In this document: positions 14,570 to 58,751 of the stretch, one piece after another
Numbering within the stretch: position 1 is the stretch's first letter
Layout: each line of letters begins with the position of its first letter
Assembly: GCA_964247055.1 (NCBI GenBank)
Contig: OZ176055.1
Span: 744,001 to 808,000 of the forward strand
Reading direction: 5' to 3'
Source: Paragordius varius
Lineage: Eukaryota > Animalia > Nematomorpha
Length of the DNA: 64,000 bases
Translations under genes and position numbers: made by a program
Notes under the pieces: generated by a model
What the model was told of the DNA's origin: nothing
Databases searched by the model: none
What the model saw: the letters and a program-made list of their open reading frames with translations, nothing else

Positions 14570-15899
14570 TTGCCATAATGAATAGAAAGTTAGATGACTA
14601 TTGCCAGGAAATTCTTGGAATTATGCCTTGATGGGGTTTTTATTATATTTTTTGTTAATATATTGCCTAACCAATTATCGGCTCTTATATTTTTTAGCTT
14701 GTAGAACTGGAAAATGTTGTTGATCACTGTTATTGCTCGGCGGTTAACTCTATTTTTTTTTAAAAAAAAGGTAGGAAAATTTATAGATACTATTTACATT
14801 TCAAATTTACCCTTAAACACCAGATGCAACATAAAACATAACGGAGGATTTACTTTAAACGTTCGTATTACTATTTGTAAAATATTATAAATATATTAAA
14901 TTGCAGGTAATTTTTTGTTTAAAATTCCTAAATACTTTAAATAAATTAAATTAAACACTCAAAATGATGCATACATTATTTAGAGTGAAGAAATGATAAA
15001 CTTTAACGAAAAATCATTAATCTTACCATAGTTAATTTAGTATGATAACTTTAAAAAATTGAAGATCTATACCAAGTCACCTAGTATTTATACAACAAAC
15101 GTTTAAATTTTAATACTTTACTAACTGGCCGTGCCAAGTTTGTGTAATACAGTCTAACTGATATTCGAATAAATTATTGCATTAGAACAAATGGACATAC
15201 CAAAATTAATAAAACCTTACTATATTTAACTATAAAGATTGATGTAATGGTTTGTGTCACTTGCCTGTACTTGTCATGAAGATACTCCACATACCAAACA
15301 ACAATCTATTATAAAATTTATATTATTTTAGCTTAAATTCCCATACCTATAGATTGTGCAAAAGCTTTAAGATTAAAGGTGGAGATAACAAGTAAAATGG
15401 CTTTTTTGGAGTCGTTTATTTTGAATCTTATTTCACCATATCTACTGGATTAAGGTATTCCAAATTTTATTTTTAAATTAGTTTTCGGAAATGATATTTG
15501 TTGATTAATATAAATTATGCCCATTTTTTTCAAACCCATTTATAATAACCGCAAAATTTACGACGAGACTATTTGCCAATTATTGGGGCTGATTACCAAT
15601 CTTAGACATTTTGAACCGGGAATTTTTACCTGACAGATATAATTAAGTGAGAGTCGATATTTTATTTCTAATTTAATTCCCACATCTGCTGGAACAAGGG
15701 ATATAAACTTTGATTTTGATATGCCTCTTTGGAAATGAGATAGTATTTGATTAAAATATCTATAAAATTTGTTAATGATAAGCGCATAAATATTGGTTAA
15801 TATTATATGTACATCTCCTCAATTATATCACAAGCTTTAAATGTACCGTTGCAAACTCAAGCCCTTAAAGACCCGATGGCGAGACTACTTGTCAATCAT
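14570..15899 (-). CDS. Candidate multi-exon gene fragment (unresolved)
   Basis: Phase-compatible exons 15899-15889 (MID), 15759-15562 (YFNQILSHFQRGISKSKFISLVPADVGIKLEIKYRLSLNYICQVKIPGSKCLRLVISPNNWQIVS) and 15444-15347 (RYGEIRFKINDSKKAILLVISTFNLKAFAQSI) with GT-AG ends. Downstream exons are ambiguous and no homology was recognised. Confidence 0.35.
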
Positions 15900-16958: not shown

Positions 16959-17146
16959 TTGAAAAAAGGGTTTAGCCAATGTCGTGTACTTTAAACAATT
17001 AAATAATTTTTAATTTGAATATATTTAAAACAAATCTTATTAGTATAGATATATATATATTCTTAAGACCCATGTATTGATGTAAATGACGCATGTAAAA
17101 TGTTTGTAACAGTTGCAAACTATTTATTGTTTGGAAAACTCATGCT

Positions 17147-20100
17147 ATGGCTATAAAAATACGCATCAAGGGAGCTTCAAAGAAGTTTTCAAAAGGGCAC
17201 AGTAGCTCAATCAATCCGGCCACAAAAAGGTTTAGGAATAGTATAGGTATATAAAAATTCATCAAATTTAGAAAAAATAGAAAGCGAATTAAAATCTACT
17301 CATTTGAGTGAGTATGGAGATGGCAGCAATGATGATGCCATATCTTATAAAACCGATGTGAGTACTTGGACAAATTGTTCCAACATAACATTTAGCAAAT
17401 TAATTGATAAAAGCGATCTAATACATACAGTTCTTCATCGCGAAGTTAGCCTCTATGATTTTATAATAGATTTTAAGCGTTTTAGGAACTGTTACCGATA
17501 TAATTCGACAGAAAAATGGAAAAGAAACGGATTTAGAGTATTTTGCCTTACTCATGACGACATTATCTTCTTCACATTTTTCAAATTTGGCAGTTGATGA
17601 CTTGCAAGAAATAACCCTAACCGCCACGGTTTTCTTGATAAATGTTGTGATAAAACGTGTCCCCACTTCCCTGATAGTGACTAAATGTTCCATTTTTATT
17701 CAAGCTATACTCAATTCTTTCCTCATGTTTCAAGCATGTCTAGCAAAAAATAAGGACAAATTAGATACTGATAAAAATACTTTGAACAACGAAAGTTCTG
17801 CCGGAACCAATTTAACTGAATTCCGAAATGACCATGGACCTTATTTATTTTACACATGTGCTTTTTCCATCTTAGCCCACATTATTCGACATCAACCGGA
17901 AATATCGCTTGATGAGTTGTCAGACGATACTAATACGCTTTCAAACATTCATAAAGTAATAAAAGTTTTTATATTCCTTGATAAAGCTTTTTTGGTGCAA
18001 AATAAAACTATATATAATAAAATTGATAAATAATTTTACAATAGAAATTGAAATTACAAAAAAACTTAAAATTCAAGACAAAATTTTCAAAAAAATTATA
18101 TATTTTTTCTACTTATTTTTTAAACATTACTTTTCGTGATGTAAATTGGAAACATTCTCAATAATATGTTTCACAAAGTAATATAAAATTATCAAGATTC
18201 AAATATGACTATCTTTGTATATAGTTAATATTTGTCCCTTAATTTTTAAGATTTATTTATATAATTTTTACTTTTACTTACATTTTGAATAGCATTTATT
18301 CACAAAATATTTTATATCATATCGCTTTTACAGGCTTTTGATCTATTACTCACGTACAGTATCGATGAACATCCCAAGATTAGGAAGTCTGCAAAGAGAG
18401 CGCTTGAAAGAATATTTGAGTCTACTAATGAAAGTTCCAATCAATTAGAGAATTCCAATTATGCAGTTGAGAAAAGTTTACCAAAACAGGCCTTAATTCA
18501 ACGCCTCTCACTTTTCTATGGGACTGTTATAGCGGAAAATCTGAAATCAATCGATTTTACGGCTTATAATCAGGCTATGAAAACTCTACGAAAACGAAAA
18601 CACTCTACACCAAAGAATGAGTATATGAACAAACATAAAGTAATTATTTAGCATTTTAAATTTTACAAGCAATGCAAAATAAAGTTTTTGATTTTTGAAA
18701 AAAAGCATTAAAAATTGAAATAAAAAATGAAATTTAAGAATATATTGTTTCTAAAAGGAAAGAAAATCAAAACATTTGAAACCCTGATATTTTACATAAC
18801 CAATATAATTGCAATATATAATTTATAATTGAAAGTTCTATCAATTTACATCTTTACTCCTTATACCATACCCCAAAACGATAGGTTTTTATTGAAAAAT
18901 CAAAGAATAATATGGTTTACATTGTAAAAAATATTAGTTTTTATACTTGTTTTGTGTTGTCTTTTAATTATAATTCAAACCTGTTTATACATTAAATTTA
19001 TTACAAAATAAAGAAATAAATTACCTTTTTTTCGAATGAACTGGTTTTGTTATTATTTAAAGGCTATATCGAAAATTGGATTGAAATTTAGAAATGTACC
19101 TTATATGTTTCCTAATCTTACAATGTTGCACCATAATTTTAAAAATGGTATAAGTTATTTTGAATCCGAAAAATATGGATGAAAATAAAACTAAATTTAT
19201 CATTTATAGATATAAAATGAAAGTATACGGACAAAACGTAAAATATAAAGATAGAAATGTTTTTTTTACTCAAAAAATCATTTAGTAAAAATCTTAAAAT
19301 ATGTAATTTATTGTGTTACCATTATACATCTCTATTTTATATTTTGAGCTTAAAATAATGAGTATTATAGAAAACAATCAAGATTTTATGAGTATGGTTG
19401 TTTATTAGAAAAAAATATTTGCCGTTATAATTTTAATTTTTACCGTATGATAATATATCAAATACATTAATTGTCATAAAATAAAAATTGGGTATTGATT
19501 TAAATGGTTAATAAATGTTTTACAATATTGAGTGATATAAACCATTTACAATTCAAATTCACCCTAAAAATGAATTATGTGTTTTCATCACTAATATAAC
19601 ACATTATTAATATTATGAAATATATCTTTATGGCCAAGGTTTCTATTTTTCATACTATTATTAATTTTAAACAAAATTCTATTTTTTATAAATATAGGTA
19701 TAGGTACAATTTAATTTTAAAAAGCACATAATTTATTTACGGGTGAATTTGAATTGTTTAAAGGTGAATTTGAATGGTTTAAGGGTGATTTTTGACTGTA
19801 AATAGTATTTTATTATATATGCAATTTCCAAAATGCTTGTTATGTTTTTACCACCATGAATAATTTTTTTAAGTTTTTTTTTAATTTTTTTTTAGTATTC
19901 TTTCAAGCTTTGGAAATAATCTTGGGATATTAAGTTTTCTGGTTTAAACGCTTTAAAGTTTGATATTTGAAACTTTTAACATAATAATTTGGATGTATTC
20001 CTTTTCGATTTATCTCATTTTATATGATTTTATTTGACTTGACTACAATCATTTATAAGGCTAACATTATTATTTACCATTTTCAAAAAATATAAGCTCT

Positions 20101-22733
20101 TTTTTTACTATTTCTATGATTTGTTTTTAGCATTTTATCCGTAAAATTCAACAATCCTTGAAAGCATATATGGAATTTTGTGGACAATTAGCTACAAAAT
20201 ATGGTATTGTTAAGGAGCATAATTTAATTGAATGTATGATTGCCAAGGGCCTAGAATGGACCTTAAAAATTTATAATGTCCCGCTTGAATCTGATTTAGT
20301 AAGTTTTTTAGTTGTTTCATTTTCTTATAAAAAAATTTTAATTATGTTTTCTGAAATTGTATATATTTATGCTTTATTTATATATGTATATTAAAGAAAT
20401 TTAATTTTTTTAATATTAAATAATTGTAATATTAATATATTATTAAATTAATATAATGTATTGTTTAGAAAAAAATTTCTTTAAATAAAAATCAAGCTTA
20501 TATAAAGTAAATGAAAAAAAAAATAAGTCCATAAAAATATATTTTCATTGGAAATATTTCATATAGTAATAATTGAAATAATGTTATTATTTTGATATGA
20601 AATTATACTTGTATAAATTAAATCATATATTTTTTGAATATTTGCCTAGAAACTCAAGATATCAACACTACAGACACTTTCAACCTTCTTTAAAACTTTG
20701 TTTGAAAACGATAAACGTGAAAAAAGTCCTGTCTTGGAACAAAAAATGTTAAATAGGTAATTAATTTTTTTTATATATATAGTTCCAATTCGCCCTTAAA
20801 CAATTTGAATTCACCCTAAAAATAAATTATGTGTTTTTGAACTAATATAACTCATCATTAATATGAAATATATCTTTATGGCATAATTTGAATTCACCCT
20901 AAAAACAAATTATGTGTTTTAGAACTTATATAACTCATTATTAATATGAAATATATCTTTATGGCATAGTTTATTATTTTTTCATAGTTTTAGCTTTCTA
21001 AACTTTTTTATTACCTATTAAAAATATTGGTTATTTTTTCCATAAATCATATTACCTATTTGGTGAATTTGAATTGTTTGAGGGTGTATTTGAATTCTTT
21101 AAGGGTGAATTTGAAAATTTAAATTGTTTAAGGGTGAATTTAAATTTTTTAATCCCTTCTTTTTTATTCATAATAGTGAACAAATGTCGGGAAAATATAG
21201 CTTTTTGAATGAGGAGATGTGCGCAAAAATCTTGGCTACCCTATATAACCTATTTCCTAATAATCCAGAAACTCGTGAAAGCTCTAATATTGATTTTTCT
21301 TTGAATGGTAGTTTTACATTAACTTTTTTTATGTTAAAATTTAAATCAAAAATATATTTACAGTTCAAATTCACCCTCGAAAAATTTAAATTTACCCTAA
21401 ATGACAATTGTTTGTTTTCAAACTAATATAACTCATTATGAATATGAAATATACAATCGTTTTGGCATAGTTTATTATTTTTTCATGGTATTGTTTTAAT
21501 TTTAAACGAAATTTTATTTTTTAAAAAAATATATTAAAATATAAATGATTTTTAATTTAAAAAACGCATAATTATTTTGGGTGAATTAGAATTGTTTAAA
21601 GGTAAAATTTGAATTGTTCAAAGGTGAATATTAACTGTAATGGTTGAAAGTAATATTCTGAAGTATTTATATATTATTAATTTTTTCAGTATTTGTTTCA
21701 ATCAAAAAAAATAAGGTTCTGCGCAGTCATACTGTAAAAATTTAAATTATACCGGCAAAACGTAAATTCATAAAGATAAATTTTGTCTTCCAAAAAACAA
21801 TCGCGCTGTAATTTTTTGCAACTATTTCAATACATATAACTAATTGCGTTAAATTGCAACGCGTATTAAATAGAGATATAAATTCGTAAAACAATCAGTT
21901 ATATAATATATATTTAAAATCGTATAATTTATAGCAAATTAAGATGTTTATGGTTCCAAAAAAGTATGGTTGCCTTTTTACTTAGGTTTTATACATTTTT
22001 ACGTTTTGTCCGTTATAATTTGAATTTTTCCTGCATATTTATGCTAACTTATAACTTTTTATCTATCTTCAAATAAATTTTTTTTTATAAATTTTACACA
22101 TTTTTTAAATGTTACACAGAATCAAATAATTACCAATCCGGCCCCCATAGTAATGTAAACGACGTTACACCTTATAAAACATGGATTAGTACACTTTTAT
22201 ACGGTGTCAGTTATTTTAGTAGAATTAATGCTAAATTATCCAGGAGTCACGTATGTCGCATACAAACCATTTTTTTCCATTACACTTTACATTGGTTTTC
22301 TGCTTTTTCTTCGTTCAAAGTTAATAGTGTGCCAATTGAAACTACACAATCTAATATTATTACTACTGATAAAAAGAAAAAGCGCGTTGTTAGATTTAAT
22401 GAAATTACGACGGAAAAATCTTTGAAAAATGGGGGGAATTCTGTGAAAACTAATGTTAAAATTGCTGGAAACTCTAACTTAGAATTAGTGAATAATTTCG
22501 TTAGAGAACATATATCACAAGTATTTGCTGTCCTAACTCTTGTTTTGGATGGGGAAAGGTATATTTATTTTAATGGTTTTATAAATTTTTGGATTTTTGA
22601 ATAGTTTAATAAATATTTTGCGTAAAACACATGATTAAAAAATGTTAACTAAAGCATTTAAAAAATAAATATAGTTTTTAACTTGTAAACTTAATTAAAA
22701 TTGTTAACTCTTTGATATTAAAAAAATTATGTA

Positions 22734-40700: not shown

Positions 40701-41853
40701 CTCAAAATCTTCCTTTTTTCCCTTTATTTTTAAATAGATTTTTTAATATGCGTCTATTCAATTATAATTAGCTTAACTTATGCTGATCATCTTGCACTTT
40801 TTTGATTTTTAAACAAGGACTTTGTGTATAAAATTTTAATCGCTTAAGTATATTTTTACCAAATGAGTTGAAAAATAATATATTCTTTCCTTATATCTTT
40901 TATCCTTTTTTAGGATTCTTAGTATTGTGCCATTTTATTCAATAGAAATTATTGTGGGGGATTTACAGTAAAAATTGAAATTATATCCTTTAAACTTATA
41001 TATATGGAAAAATAAGGTTTGAAATGTATGTTTGAAAAAAAAATGTTTGTCTTTATGTTTTTTCATTTTGTCCGTATAATTTCAATTTTTACTGTAACTA
41101 TAAATTTTATATGTATTTTCTTTACACTGTGACTGGTTATAATATATACAGTTCAAATACACACTTAAACTATTCGAATTCATCCTTAAACAATTTAAAT
41201 TTACCCTTAAAATAAATTATGTTTTTTTTTCAAGATTAAAAATTATCTATATTTTTTTACATTTTTAAAAATAATGTAATACTGAAAAACTAATAAACTA
41301 TGCCATAAAGATATATTACATTTGAATGATGATTTATATTAGCCCAAAAACATAAGGGTGAATTTGAATTGCTCAAGGGTGTGAATTGTAAATCGTATAT
41401 ATATATATATATATATAATTTCCCCTAATTCTGTACGATACACGCATATATTAATAAAAATTATATAAATTTCAAATATATTGATTGGAGTGCTTTATAT
41501 TTTGAAATTTTCTCAGTATGTTAATAACATAAATTGTTTAAAGGTAAATTACTTTTGTTTTTGATAAATTTTGAGTTTAACTGCATTTTTAAGCGTACAT
41601 ACCTGTTATAACCCCATTTTATTATTTAATTCAATAGATTCATACGTCTGATATGTTGACTAATTCCTATTCAACAATCAAAAATAAAACTTTGTTGCGC
41701 TCGAAAGACTCTAAAGGGGAGAAAAAACAGCAAAATACCGATGCCAGATATGCTTATATCCCGTTAGATCGAAAGATTTTGAGTAAAAGACGCCAAACTT
41801 TGAAGCAAGCCAGTAGACTTAAGGGCATAGTTCGATCAAAGAAAAGAGTTTAA
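17147..41853 (+). CDS. RRP12: RRP12 (NUC173-domain ribosome biogenesis/export HEAT protein), 27 exons, about 1,950 aa
   Basis: Exons 17147-17246, 17272-17444, 17470-17955, 18334-18620, 19896-19941 (least certain), 20131-20298, 20650-20756, 21177-21307, 22120-22558, 23009-23282, 24073-24413, 25814-25992, 26659-26916, 27780-27952, 29282-29482, 30705-30954, 31551-31707, 32146-32554, 33835-33929, 34624-34946, 35672-35773, 36882-37108, 37636-37727, 38302-38490, 39634-39734, 40256-40578, 41638-41853; 5847 nt in frame. Motifs recalled from RRP12: KKFSKGHSSSINPA, TNCSNITFSK, GKETDLEYFALLMTT, VIKRVP, HPKIRKSA, FGPHIFLQYIP, RSWIFPLM, QIWSILPCF, LIPEAIL, SEDGKMII, YAYIPLDR. Confidence 0.95.
17247..17271 (+). 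other. 25-nt GT-AG intron (RRP12 intron 1)
   Basis: gtatataaaaattcatcaaatttag. It contains an in-frame TAA, and removing it joins the conserved N-terminal motif to the downstream frame. Alternative sites (donor 17241, acceptor 17280) would give 31, 34 or 40 nt. Confidence 0.8.
17445..17469 (+). other. 25-nt GT-AG intron (RRP12 intron 2)
   Basis: gttagcctctatgatttttataatag. Removal gives LHRE|ILSVLGTVTDIIRQKNGKETDLEYFALLMTT, collinear with human AHKE|[31 protein letters not shown]. Without it the gene is frameshifted. Confidence 0.92.
19207..19445. mobile_element. MITE family B
   Basis: aagtatacggacaaaacgtaaaatataaagata ... gccgttataattttaatttttaccg-ta. Confidence 0.7.
19542..19805. mobile_element. 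MITE family A
   Basis: ccatttacaattcaaattcaccct ... gggtgatttttgactgtaaat, with the family A internal core. Confidence 0.8.
20782..21150. mobile_element. MITE family A derivative with an internal tandem duplication
   Basis: aattcaccctaaaa(t/c)aaattatgtgtttt...aactaatataactcat block occurs twice (about 20808, 20888); gggtgaatttgaa repeats run to about 21145. Confidence 0.7.
21357..21643. mobile_element. MITE family A
   Basis: tttacagttcaaattcaccctcg ... aaggtgaatattaactgtaatgg. Confidence 0.75.
21732..22033. mobile_element. MITE family B
   Basis: ctgtaaaaatttaaattataccggcaaaacg ... acgttttgtccgttataatttgaatttttcctg. Confidence 0.7.
22735..22766. repeat. (TA)n microsatellite
   Basis: About 16 TA units; others at about 10634, 31021, 37417, 41397 and 44115. 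Confidence 0.9.
23678..23940. mobile_element. MITE family B
   Basis: agtaaaaattgaaattatacggacaaaac ... acgttttacccttataatttcaatttttac. Confidence 0.75.
24701..25100. mobile_element. MITE family A with an expanded right-hand 20-bp repeat array
   Basis: tata-ccatttacagttcatattcgcc; about 8 degenerate gggtgaatttgaattgtt units at 24891-25085. Confidence 0.75.
26168..26459 (+). mobile_element. Non-autonomous Helitron/Helentron-like element (about 290 bp)
   Basis: 3' hairpin ctcgggctgc-gta-gcagcacgag followed by atcgCTAG|t. A near-identical reverse-complement copy lies at 44458-44750. Confidence 0.7.
27226..27503. mobile_element. MITE family B
   Basis: ta-cagtaaaaattgaaattatacggacaaaacg ... cgttttgtccgtataattacaattccaattttactg-ta. 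Confidence 0.9.
28022..28304. mobile_element. MITE family B
   Basis: ta-cagtcacgaaattttacggacaaaac ... ttttgttcgtataattccaacttttactg-ta. Confidence 0.85.
28776..29056. mobile_element. MITE family A
   Basis: tata-tcatttacaaatcaaatttaccctt ... aagggtgaattagatctataaatgg-tata. Confidence 0.8.
29751..30077. mobile_element. MITE family B
   Basis: cagtaataattgaaattatacggacagaac ... tatttcaatttttacag. Confidence 0.7.
30165..30340. mobile_element. MITE family C
   Basis: tttaatggttgcttc ... aagcaatcattaaaatgcacact. Confidence 0.65.
31849..32108. mobile_element. MITE family A
   Basis: ccatttacaagttaaatttacc ... aagggtaaatttaaattctaaatgg-tata; ends 37 nt before the exon 18 acceptor. Confidence 0.75.
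32797..33081. mobile_element. MITE family B
   Basis: ta-tagtaaaatttaatattatacggacaaaacg ... gttcgtataatctgaatttttactg. Confidence 0.8.
33505..33783. mobile_element. MITE family A
   Basis: TATA|ccatttacaattcaaatttaccc ... gggtgaattcgatctgtaaatgg|TATA. Confidence 0.9.
34028..34312. mobile_element. MITE family B
   Basis: ta-cagtaaaaattgaaatt...ggacaaaacg ... acattttgtccgta. Confidence 0.75.
34962..35288. mobile_element. MITE family A with an expanded left 20-bp array
   Basis: ccatttatagttcaaattc followed by about 6 units; ends gaatggtaaatgg. Confidence 0.8.
35988..36399. mobile_element. MITE family A with an expanded right 20-bp array
   Basis: catttacaattcgtattcacc ...; about 8 gggtgaatttgaattgtt units at 36210-36390; ends aaaatgg-tata. 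Confidence 0.85.
37874..38122. mobile_element. MITE family A
   Basis: tata-ccatacagtttaaattcaccc ... gggtgaattttaattgtaaatgg. Confidence 0.75.
38645..38846. mobile_element. MITE family D (CAGTAT(G/A)AGT...CTAGAAAGTTATTAATTATTG TIR)
   Basis: About 200-bp foldback; second copy at 45226-45421. Confidence 0.75.
38925..39105. mobile_element. MITE family C
   Basis: cagtatgcatttcaatgtggtt ... aagcaaccattaatatgcatactg-ta. Confidence 0.75.
39878..40121. mobile_element. MITE family B
   Basis: ta-cagtaaaaattgaaattacggac ... acgttttgtccccgtataatttgatgttttact. Confidence 0.8.
40966..41094. mobile_element. Short (129-bp) family B derivative
   Basis: ta-cagtaaaaattgaaattata ... tataatttcaatttttactg-ta, with a deleted interior. 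Confidence 0.85.
41146..41395. mobile_element. MITE family A
   Basis: acagttcaaatacacacttaaac ... agggtgaatttgaattgctcaagggtgtgaattgtaaatcg. Confidence 0.7.
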
Positions 41854-56296: not shown

Positions 56297-58751
56297 ATGA
56301 GTCTTGCCTTATTAAATCAAAATGGCCATGATAAAAATAAAGTTTTAACACCTAGCATGCACAATAATAGTAATGATAATATAAACTCACATATAACTTT
56401 TAACCCCCATCTCAATATCATGAACTATTATTCTTCAAGTCCACACCATAGGTCTGCTATTGAGGGAAGTAGTATTAAGCTTACCCCATCTTACACAATG
56501 ACACCCATGTATGAAAAAAATGTCATTTCAAACAGCGCACTTTATACGAATCCATTTTCCCCTTTTGTAGCAAGTGTAATGTATAATCATGCTGTAGCAG
56601 CTGGTTCATTCTATAATTCGGCCGCCGTCGTGTCAAATTATAATCCGGCTTTATTATGTAATAATCATCGATTACAATCCACCAAAGTGAATGATGTCAT
56701 TACTGATGATGCAACAATGTATAATAATCGCAACTATGTTACTAATCCCAATTCAAATCCTTACAACATTGGAGGAGGACAAAATTATTTTGGTGGTAGT
56801 AAGGAAACATTGTTTAATTTTTTGCCTGCGTCAGCAAATCATGGTAAAAACTTGAATAATGAACCAAACTCTAACTTACGACCAAACAACGGTTCAGAAT
56901 GCAATGCTCTATGTAAAAAAATGTCAATACTTAATAAACAACAAAATGACGCATATGGTATAAATAAGGATGATTATCAACAAGAGAAAAACACGCAACG
57001 CTCTCCGGAACATCCAAATGGTTTTCAACAATCAAATGGTGTTTATTATTCGAAAAATCCAATGTATCCGCCCAACAACAAAAACAACAGTAATTACGAT
57101 GAAACCATAAATAGTGGTTCTTCCGAGGATTTCGACTTGAGCGCTAATAATGACTCTGCCAGAAGAAATAACCCAATTTACTTACAAAACAATACTAAAA
57201 GGATGATTGATAGGTCTGATGCCTTGTATCCTTGGATGAAAAATCAATTTGGTAGCTATTTTGTTTTTTGCAATTTTTTTTGTTTTAGCAGAAAATTGTA
57301 TTATATATTTTTACCATTAAATATTTGCTGAATACAGTCTTTTTATACCTTATACTTCTATAAAATCATGTTAAACTGATACTTAAAGCCTTGGATATAT
57401 TTCTTTTATAGTATATTTTTGATAGATTAGTTTCGTAAAAAATGACCATATAACTTTTTTTGACCATTTACCATGTCAAAATAGGATGATATTTTATATA
57501 TGTATAAGATTTTGCATTATAAATTTCAAGTAAAGGCCATCCATATTGATACATTTTTGCTTATGGCTATAATTTATAAGACCTATTCAAAAATATATAT
57601 ATCATATATACTGGTAAAAAATTCTGGTTTTTTTATATATAATTATCGATTTTTTGCCAAAATCTAACCGTTTTGGTTGGTGTCAGAAAAGAGAGAGATA
57701 TAGTTAATAAAAATTGCTAACTATTTATTTACTGTTTTAATTTATTTACTTAAAGCAACAACGGTCTATAAGAAATTGAGAGGAAGACAAAATATATACT
57801 TTATTTTAACTATATAATTAAAAGTATTTTTTATTCATAAATTTGAAAAATATATATTTTATCTATGGAAAATGATAAAATTACAGTTATATGTTGCTAA
57901 ATATACAATGTGCGTTTTTGAGAAAATATGCTTTTTTTAAAAAATGTGTTTTTTCACTTTAACGATAACAGTCCTTTAAAATTAAATTTGTCAAATTCGG
58001 CTTAGGGCAAATATTTTGTATACGCAACAAAGAGGATGATAAAAGATAAAAAATTTTTTTTTAACATTAAGCGGTGCATAATAAAAAGGTTTATTTAACG
58101 AGGACAATTGAAAAAAATAATATGTAAAATACTATAAATATCTTTTAATTCTAATGTTAAAAAAACTTTAACTCTCTTTCTATCTAAATTTGACATTAAT
58201 TATACGTAATAAAACCGTTGTGATTATTTATAAATGCAGGCTTTCACTATATCATAACCGGTAAGTTTAGACTCCTAAAATATATGTTATAATGAAAGCA
58301 AAACCAAATTTAACCTAGTAAAATGGTAAGTATTTAGATTTCCTAAAATTTTAAATCAAATATGATTTTGGCAGTTTAATTAAGTGTTAGGATTAATGGC
58401 ATTTATAAAGTACCTTTATTAAGGCTAGTTATTAATACTATACTAATTATAAATTTGATTTCTACATATATAGATCGCAAAAAAGGCCGTCAAACTTACA
58501 CGAGACACCAAACGCTAGAGCTGGAAAAAGAGTTCCATTACAATCGATATCTTACACGTAGGCGTAGGATAGAAATTGCTAATAATTTGGCCCTGAGCGA
58601 AAGACAAATTAAGATATGGTTCCAGAACCGTCGAATGAAATGGAAAAAAGAAAAATTTACAGACGCCCCGGATTCCTCCATGTTTAATCCCCTCAAAAGC
58701 GATGAAAATGATGATTTTGACGAATTTCAAGAGCACGACGACGAAAAATAA
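56297..58751 (+). CDS. Antp: Antennapedia-class Hox transcription factor (about 410 aa), 2 exons
   Basis: Exon 1 56297-57251 and exon 2 58474-58751, with a phase-1 GT-AG intron 57252-58473. Spliced junction LYPWMKNQF|[10 protein letters not shown] matches arthropod Antp YPWMRSQFERKRGRQTYT. The homeodomain is 52/60 identical to the canonical Antp sequence. An alternative start at ATG 56420 (MNYY) is possible. Confidence 0.9.
58476..58655 (+). other. Homeodomain
   Basis: [60 protein letters not shown]. Confidence 0.99.

Follow-up and report, generated by a model that had tools for sequence, protein, structure and literature searches.

The 5′ coding region of an RRP12 gene in the window (the whole 64,000-nucleotide stretch of DNA analyzed here) contains two 25-nt segments that begin with GT and end with AG, and both are probably GT-AG introns of a functional RRP12 that have shrunk to ∼25 nt from longer ancestral introns. 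We consider it very likely that the second segment is a true 25-nt intron. Its position coincides exactly with that of very long introns in two other animals, and its DNA is confirmed in two haplotypes. An earlier note had read both segments as spliceosomal-type introns whose removal restores the frame; the sequence is as it described, removal does restore the frame, and the frame, the homologue alignment and the conserved intron position agree in favoring introns over frameshift errors. The features at the 5′ end of the gene are as follows.

17147 to 17246, + strand: RRP12 exon 1, 100 nt, phase-1 end, carrying the conserved N-terminal motif KKFSKGHSSSINPATKRFR
17247 to 17271, + strand: candidate intron 1, GTATATAAAAATTCATCAAATTTAG, 25 nt, GT...AG, phase 1
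17272 to 17444, + strand: RRP12 exon 2, 173 nt, phase-0 end ...TWTNCSNITFSKLIDKSDLIHTVLHRE
17445 to 17469, + strand: candidate intron 2, GTTAGCCTCTATGATTTTATAATAG, 25 nt, GT...AG, phase 0
17470 to 17955, + strand: RRP12 exon 3, 486 nt, beginning ILSVLGTVTDIIRQKNGKETDLEYFALLMTT
17956 to 18333, + strand: intron 3, 378 nt, ordinary GT...AG, phase 0
18334 to 18639, + strand: RRP12 exon 4, start firm, end tentative

The RRP12 Gene and Its Reading Frames

The exon 1 motif matches KRWKKGESSASNPATTKFR of Gordionus, and the same motif is present in eight other RRP12 proteins. All homologues share this N-terminal motif; exon 1 is therefore coding and has to be connected with exon 2 across a stop. In tblastn searches, exon 2 aligned with Gordionus RRP12 at 50% identity over 40 residues. 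Exon 3 matched human RRP12 (PDB 7wts chain K, residues 125 to 196; E = 7.5e-9) and, from profile position 35 and below the curated cut-off (20.7 bits vs. 27), the Pfam family HEAT_RRP12_N. Exon 4 matched HEAT_RRP12_N with an E value of 1.2e-6 and residues 228 to 307 of the Gordionus protein by tblastn. With the Gordionus protein as the query, tblastn traced the gene from 17156 to 41847, with the C-terminus at 41644 to 41847. The closest N-terminal RRP12 sequence comes from a hairworm, Gordionus sp. m RMFG-2023, and when its N-terminus was used as the query of a word-indexed search, no further nematomorph RRP12 was returned. When exon 3 was searched against ∼1.8 billion cluster representatives, distant RRP12 relatives only were recovered, at 49% identity or less. 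As the best RRP12 matches are distant and Gordionus is the nearest, the animal from which this DNA comes (hereafter the host) is related to the horsehair worms and is a fairly distant relative of Gordionus. No protein of the host species was present among the representatives searched with exon 3, and so no transcript-derived product either.

The conserved N-terminus of RRP12 is spread over three reading frames. The frame that starts at the ATG at 17147 encodes MAIKIRIKGASKKFSKGHSSSINPATKRFRNSI and meets a stop at 17252 to 17254. The second conserved block, KTDVSTWTNCSNITFSKL...VLHRE (...KTDVSTWTNCSNITFSKLIDKSDLIHTVLHRE), lies in the +1 frame, which is open only from 17247, and the ILSVLGTVTDII... 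block at the start of exon 3 (17470) is shifted by one more +1 frame. Removal of both 25-nt segments leaves a single open frame through exon 3, and when intron 3 is removed as well, the open frame extends through exon 4. The window is AT-rich (20 to 32% GC); calculated from its GT and AG frequencies, the chance of finding a GT and an AG at both of the places fixed by homology is ∼0.0015.

The junction at intron 3, K/AFDLLL, falls within one residue of a Gordionus junction (between Q227 and V229, ...YTQKVFNVLL), where the Gordionus intron measures 2483 nt and its boundaries are ambiguous over three nucleotides owing to a repeat. Farther downstream, the RRP12 coding blocks are spaced about 0.4 to 2 kb apart, measured from block to block. 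The range of 0.2 to 1.4 kb previously given for the other introns of this gene is roughly right in light of the 378 nt of intron 3, and the later spacing suggests a range of about 0.4 to 2 kb.

Other features of the window were recorded alongside RRP12. In parts of RRP12 introns 4 to 6 (19088 to 21900), the summed contig word depth in three DNA runs was 1e5 to 1.5e6, compared with ∼300 to 900 for unique sequence. These stretches, at 100 to 1000 times the unique depth and with many repeat joints and tandem GGTGAATTTGAATT-type units, are very high-copy short repeats. A Hox-type gene lies on the + strand at 56297 to 57331 and 58455 to 58751. Its first exon, of 344 codons, has a YPWM hexapeptide at its end, and an exon ∼1.1 kb downstream encodes a homeodomain (Pfam PF00046, E = 3e-23).

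Placement and Orthology of Intron 2

For both introns, we listed all GT...AG removals compatible with the frame. At intron 2, only the removal of 17445 to 17469 retains both the conserved H-R/K-E (HRE) and ILSVLG(TV); the alternatives, of 40, 67, 82, 94 and 109 nt, all take away conserved residues. When the predicted spliced product was aligned by MAFFT with nine RRP12 homologues (Gordionus, Octopus, mite, firefly and five others), the alignment was gap-free at HRE/IL. The introns of the orthologues were obtained by mapping annotated proteins back to their own genomic loci (isoform X1 in the case of Gordionus), and the intron 2 site compares as follows.

Host: ...VLHRE; 25 nt, phase 0, donor GAA/GTTA; ILSVLGTV
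Gordionus: ...QIHRE; 2849 nt, phase 0, donor GAA/GTTA; ILTILATV
Octopus bimaculoides: ...AVSKE; 8659 nt, phase 0; IAAVLAAV
Firefly (Abscondita): no intron
Mite (Halotydeus): no intron

The earlier note had proposed looking for this position in other animals, and both Gordionus and Octopus indeed have a phase-0 intron there, directly behind the Glu of HKE/HRE. Since a mollusc and a nematomorph have the site in common, intron 2 would be an old intron that has since shrunk. In Gordionus, the lengths of the RRP12 introns lie between 44 and 2849 nt, the shortest being those of 44 to 45 nt at 2134 to 2177 and 15733 to 15777 of the Gordionus locus. This suggests that Gordionus has a minimal-intron class near 45 nt, vs. 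about 25 nt in the host. Given that the closest RRP12 is that of Gordionus and that its shortest RRP12 introns are of this length, the 25-nt size would be derived in the host lineage.

Placement and Likely Orthology of Intron 1

Intron 1 has a wider choice of splice sites, with six removals (25, 31, 34, 40, 73 and 79 nt) keeping both the frame and the N-terminal motif. Alternatives to a 25-nt intron 1 had been foreseen, and they are real: 17241 to 17271 (31 nt), 17247 to 17280 (34 nt) and 17241 to 17280 (40 nt) do so just as 17247 to 17271 does. Both candidate donors, 17241 and 17247, are in phase 1, and the exon 1 and exon 2 frames are jointly open over 17247 to 17251 only. Gordionus (44 nt), Octopus (1422 nt) and the firefly Abscondita (53 nt) each carry a phase-1 intron in this linker, which precedes the N/P-S-x-L-T block by one or two residues. 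The host linker is shortened, and every model of intron 1 lies 1 to 2 residues off the orthologous introns. Homology does not place intron 1 uniquely, since individual residues of the linker cannot be aligned. On these comparisons, intron 1 is likely to be orthologous to the linker introns of Gordionus, Octopus and firefly, and it is probably a genuine intron of 25 to 40 nt, with 25 as the simplest choice.

The DNA Sequence and a Second Haplotype

Runs X1, X3, X9 and X10 are DNA, as their coverage includes introns and intergenic sequence; X1 and X2 also contain intron DNA. The joints listed for the DNA runs are repeat artifacts at 19.3 to 22 kb, with no splice joints readable. Over both segments, the Logan contigs of X1 agree with the reference, 17100 to 17500 having no listed indel, and record 25 of X9, which comes from a different sample, covers 17290 to 17503 without gaps. 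Contigs from DNA runs of two samples hence reproduce the sequence, and the frameshifts are not assembly indels, an outcome that the earlier note had named as one that would overturn its reading. Together with the haplotype differences described below, these contigs lead us to reject assembly error, and they argue against a pseudogene.

The X1 individual is heterozygous over 17030 to 18540, and its second haplotype is the one found in X9 and X10, the runs of sample S7, where it is fixed. This haplotype is ∼5 to 8% diverged from the reference (24 differences in 290 nt and 10 in 214 nt), which indicates that a single species label covers either cryptic lineages or very high diversity. Both haplotypes keep the 25-nt length of intron 2 and, with it, the frame shift, and the changes listed in this intron, at 17451, 17453 and 17461, spare the GT and the AG. 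Similarly, the changes listed in intron 1 (17253, 17260 and 17263) spare its GT and AG ends. The listed differences thus number 3 of 25 positions in each micro-intron, in what is a partial display of the differences. Three of the four changes listed in exon 1 fall at third codon positions, and the fourth replaces Ile with Val. In exon 3 and just beyond, the second haplotype differs in net length by 3 letters and by 9 letters, each number divisible by three, and it carries two extra letters somewhere within 17030 to 17319.

Proposed Splicing and Its Signals

According to the model that we favor, RRP12 would be expressed and functional, and both segments would be ordinary GT-AG spliceosomal introns. 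Intron 2 would span 17445 to 17469, and intron 1 would start at 17247 or 17241 and end at 17271 or 17280. Cutting of the pre-mRNA at these GT and AG sites would yield three exons in one frame, encoding the conserved RRP12 N-terminus. We infer that splicing itself would proceed with the normal U2-type machinery, in which case the branch A would lie only about 5 to 12 nt from the 3′ end. The earlier note took the small size to imply an unusually compact or modified spliceosome, which is a conjecture. A GT and an AG are present at the ends of both segments. A residues and T runs are found upstream of the AG (TTCATCAAATTTAG; TGATTTTATAATAG), at a level expected by chance in DNA of 22 to 27% GC and in two sequences only. 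No recognizable branch-point motif emerged from these two sequences.

Extended beyond this gene, the model predicts a discrete class of introns of ∼22 to 28 nt, shrunk from ancestral introns and located at the 5′ ends of genes that have repeat-filled, kilobase-sized introns, in a hairworm-related lineage. We regard such a class as likely.

Alternative Explanations

Four other explanations were weighed against splicing of the two segments. The use of other splice sites, giving introns longer than 25 nt, is unlikely. Such introns would measure, for example, 31, 34, 40, 73 or 79 nt at intron 1 and 40 nt (17430 to 17469, with loss of VLHRE) or 67 nt at intron 2, and all of them keep an open frame; at intron 1, moreover, the linker leaves homology unable to fix the choice. 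At intron 2, however, the alternatives drop residues that are conserved in all nine of the homologues (H-K/R-E or ILSVLGTVTDII) and shift the junction off the Gordionus and Octopus position, and even at intron 1 most of the alternatives are just 31 to 40 nt, below the Gordionus minimum of 44 to 45 nt. It is decidedly improbable that this RRP12 copy is a decaying pseudogene in which the shifts are mutations bracketed by GT and AG by chance. The RNA-type runs listed for the same species label, five in number, contained next to none of the sampled words of the locus, as such a copy would lead one to expect, but either shift disappears when a GT...AG segment is taken out, and one of these segments coincides precisely with an ancestral intron site. 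A GT and an AG would fall at both fixed places with a chance of ∼0.0015. The rest of the gene is also recognizable as far as its C-terminus, and the listed haplotype differences favor third codon positions, with net length differences in multiples of three. RRP12, furthermore, is an essential pre-40S factor, which counts against its decay.

The remaining two explanations take both shifts to be something other than introns or mutations, and the probability of each is very small. Each shift is +1, so a single-base assembly or sequencing indel could give the same result, but the indel-free X1 contigs and the gapless X9 record speak against this, and a one-base error would still leave eight extra residues where the nine homologues have none. 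For intron 2, these data contradict an origin in indels. That both shifts run in the +1 direction is also the sole point in favor of the segments being kept in the mRNA, with translation restoring the frame, for example through programmed +1 frameshifting. Such a ribosome would face the stop at 17252 to 17254 within intron 1, in a region where the two frames are jointly open over only about five bases, and its reading through intron 2 would add eight residues at a point where the homologues are contiguous. We know of no programmed frameshifting mechanism for RRP12. Excision of both segments as GT-AG introns is the explanation that we retain.

Comparison with Known Short Introns

In a survey from 2026 that covered 51 animal genomes, introns shorter than 30 nt turned up only in myxobolid myxozoans and in Dicyema japonicum, 30 bp having previously been held as the animal minimum (PMC13644364). 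In Henneguya, Thelohanellus and Myxobolus and in D. japonicum, introns are short as a rule, with a median of 22 to 27 nt; the splice-site motifs of these animals are reduced, and their U2 and U2AF are canonical (PMC13644364). The groups previously listed with such introns included the dicyemids but left out the myxobolid myxozoans, these two being the published animal cases (PMC13644364). Nematomorphs are unmentioned in the main text of that survey, and introns are not discussed in two nematomorph genome papers. The host segments resemble the introns of these animals in being GT-AG, within 22 to 27 nt, and at conserved positions between conserved exons; in the myxobolids and Dicyema, the 5′ splice-site signal is weak (GTa). 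Specifically, intron 2, at 25 nt, is below 30 nt and occupies a position conserved in Octopus and Gordionus. In contrast to the myxobolid and Dicyema norm, the host has its 25-nt introns at the head of a gene of 25 kb in which the others are about 0.4 to 2 kb and full of high-copy repeats, and short introns are not the norm within RRP12, as intron 3 (378 nt) and the later ones (about 0.4 to 2 kb) attest. The host also belongs to a different, Nematomorpha-like phylum.

Intron lengths are bimodal in neodermatan flatworms (tapeworms), and in Gyrodactylus salaris the modes lie near 32 and 58 bp (PMC4040987). As in these parasitic worms, the host would have a short mode beside long introns, with a bias by ordinal position (PMC4040987). 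The neodermatan short mode, however, is at ∼32 to 37 nt, compared with ∼25 nt in the host; the phylum differs; and the ordinal bias of the host comes from one gene. In ciliates such as Paramecium, introns measure ∼25 nt, and all introns of Paramecium and Nyctotherus are ultra-short (PMC5014332). The ciliate introns equal those of the host in length and share their GT-AG ends, whereas the host has two size classes in one gene. The closest comparison is with RRP12 of Gordionus itself, which has orthologous intron positions in an orthologous gene and the identical intron 2 donor (GAA/GTTA). Relative to Gordionus, the host is ∼20 nt shorter at intron 1 and 2.8 kb shorter at intron 2.

Implications

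If the two segments are spliced as proposed, they would represent a third, independent animal origin of introns shorter than 30 nt, and the first such origin outside a genome in which short introns are the norm. Extreme shortening of introns would then be possible without genome compaction. A single spliceosome would handle a distance of ∼15 nt from 5′ splice site to branch point in addition to ordinary introns, and because both size classes occur in one gene, this animal could help to establish how short an intron the animal spliceosome can still process. Gene-finding programs that require introns of at least 30 to 40 nt truncate genes of this kind or call frameshifts in them, and short introns missed in this way could inflate the apparent gene loss in nematomorph genomes.
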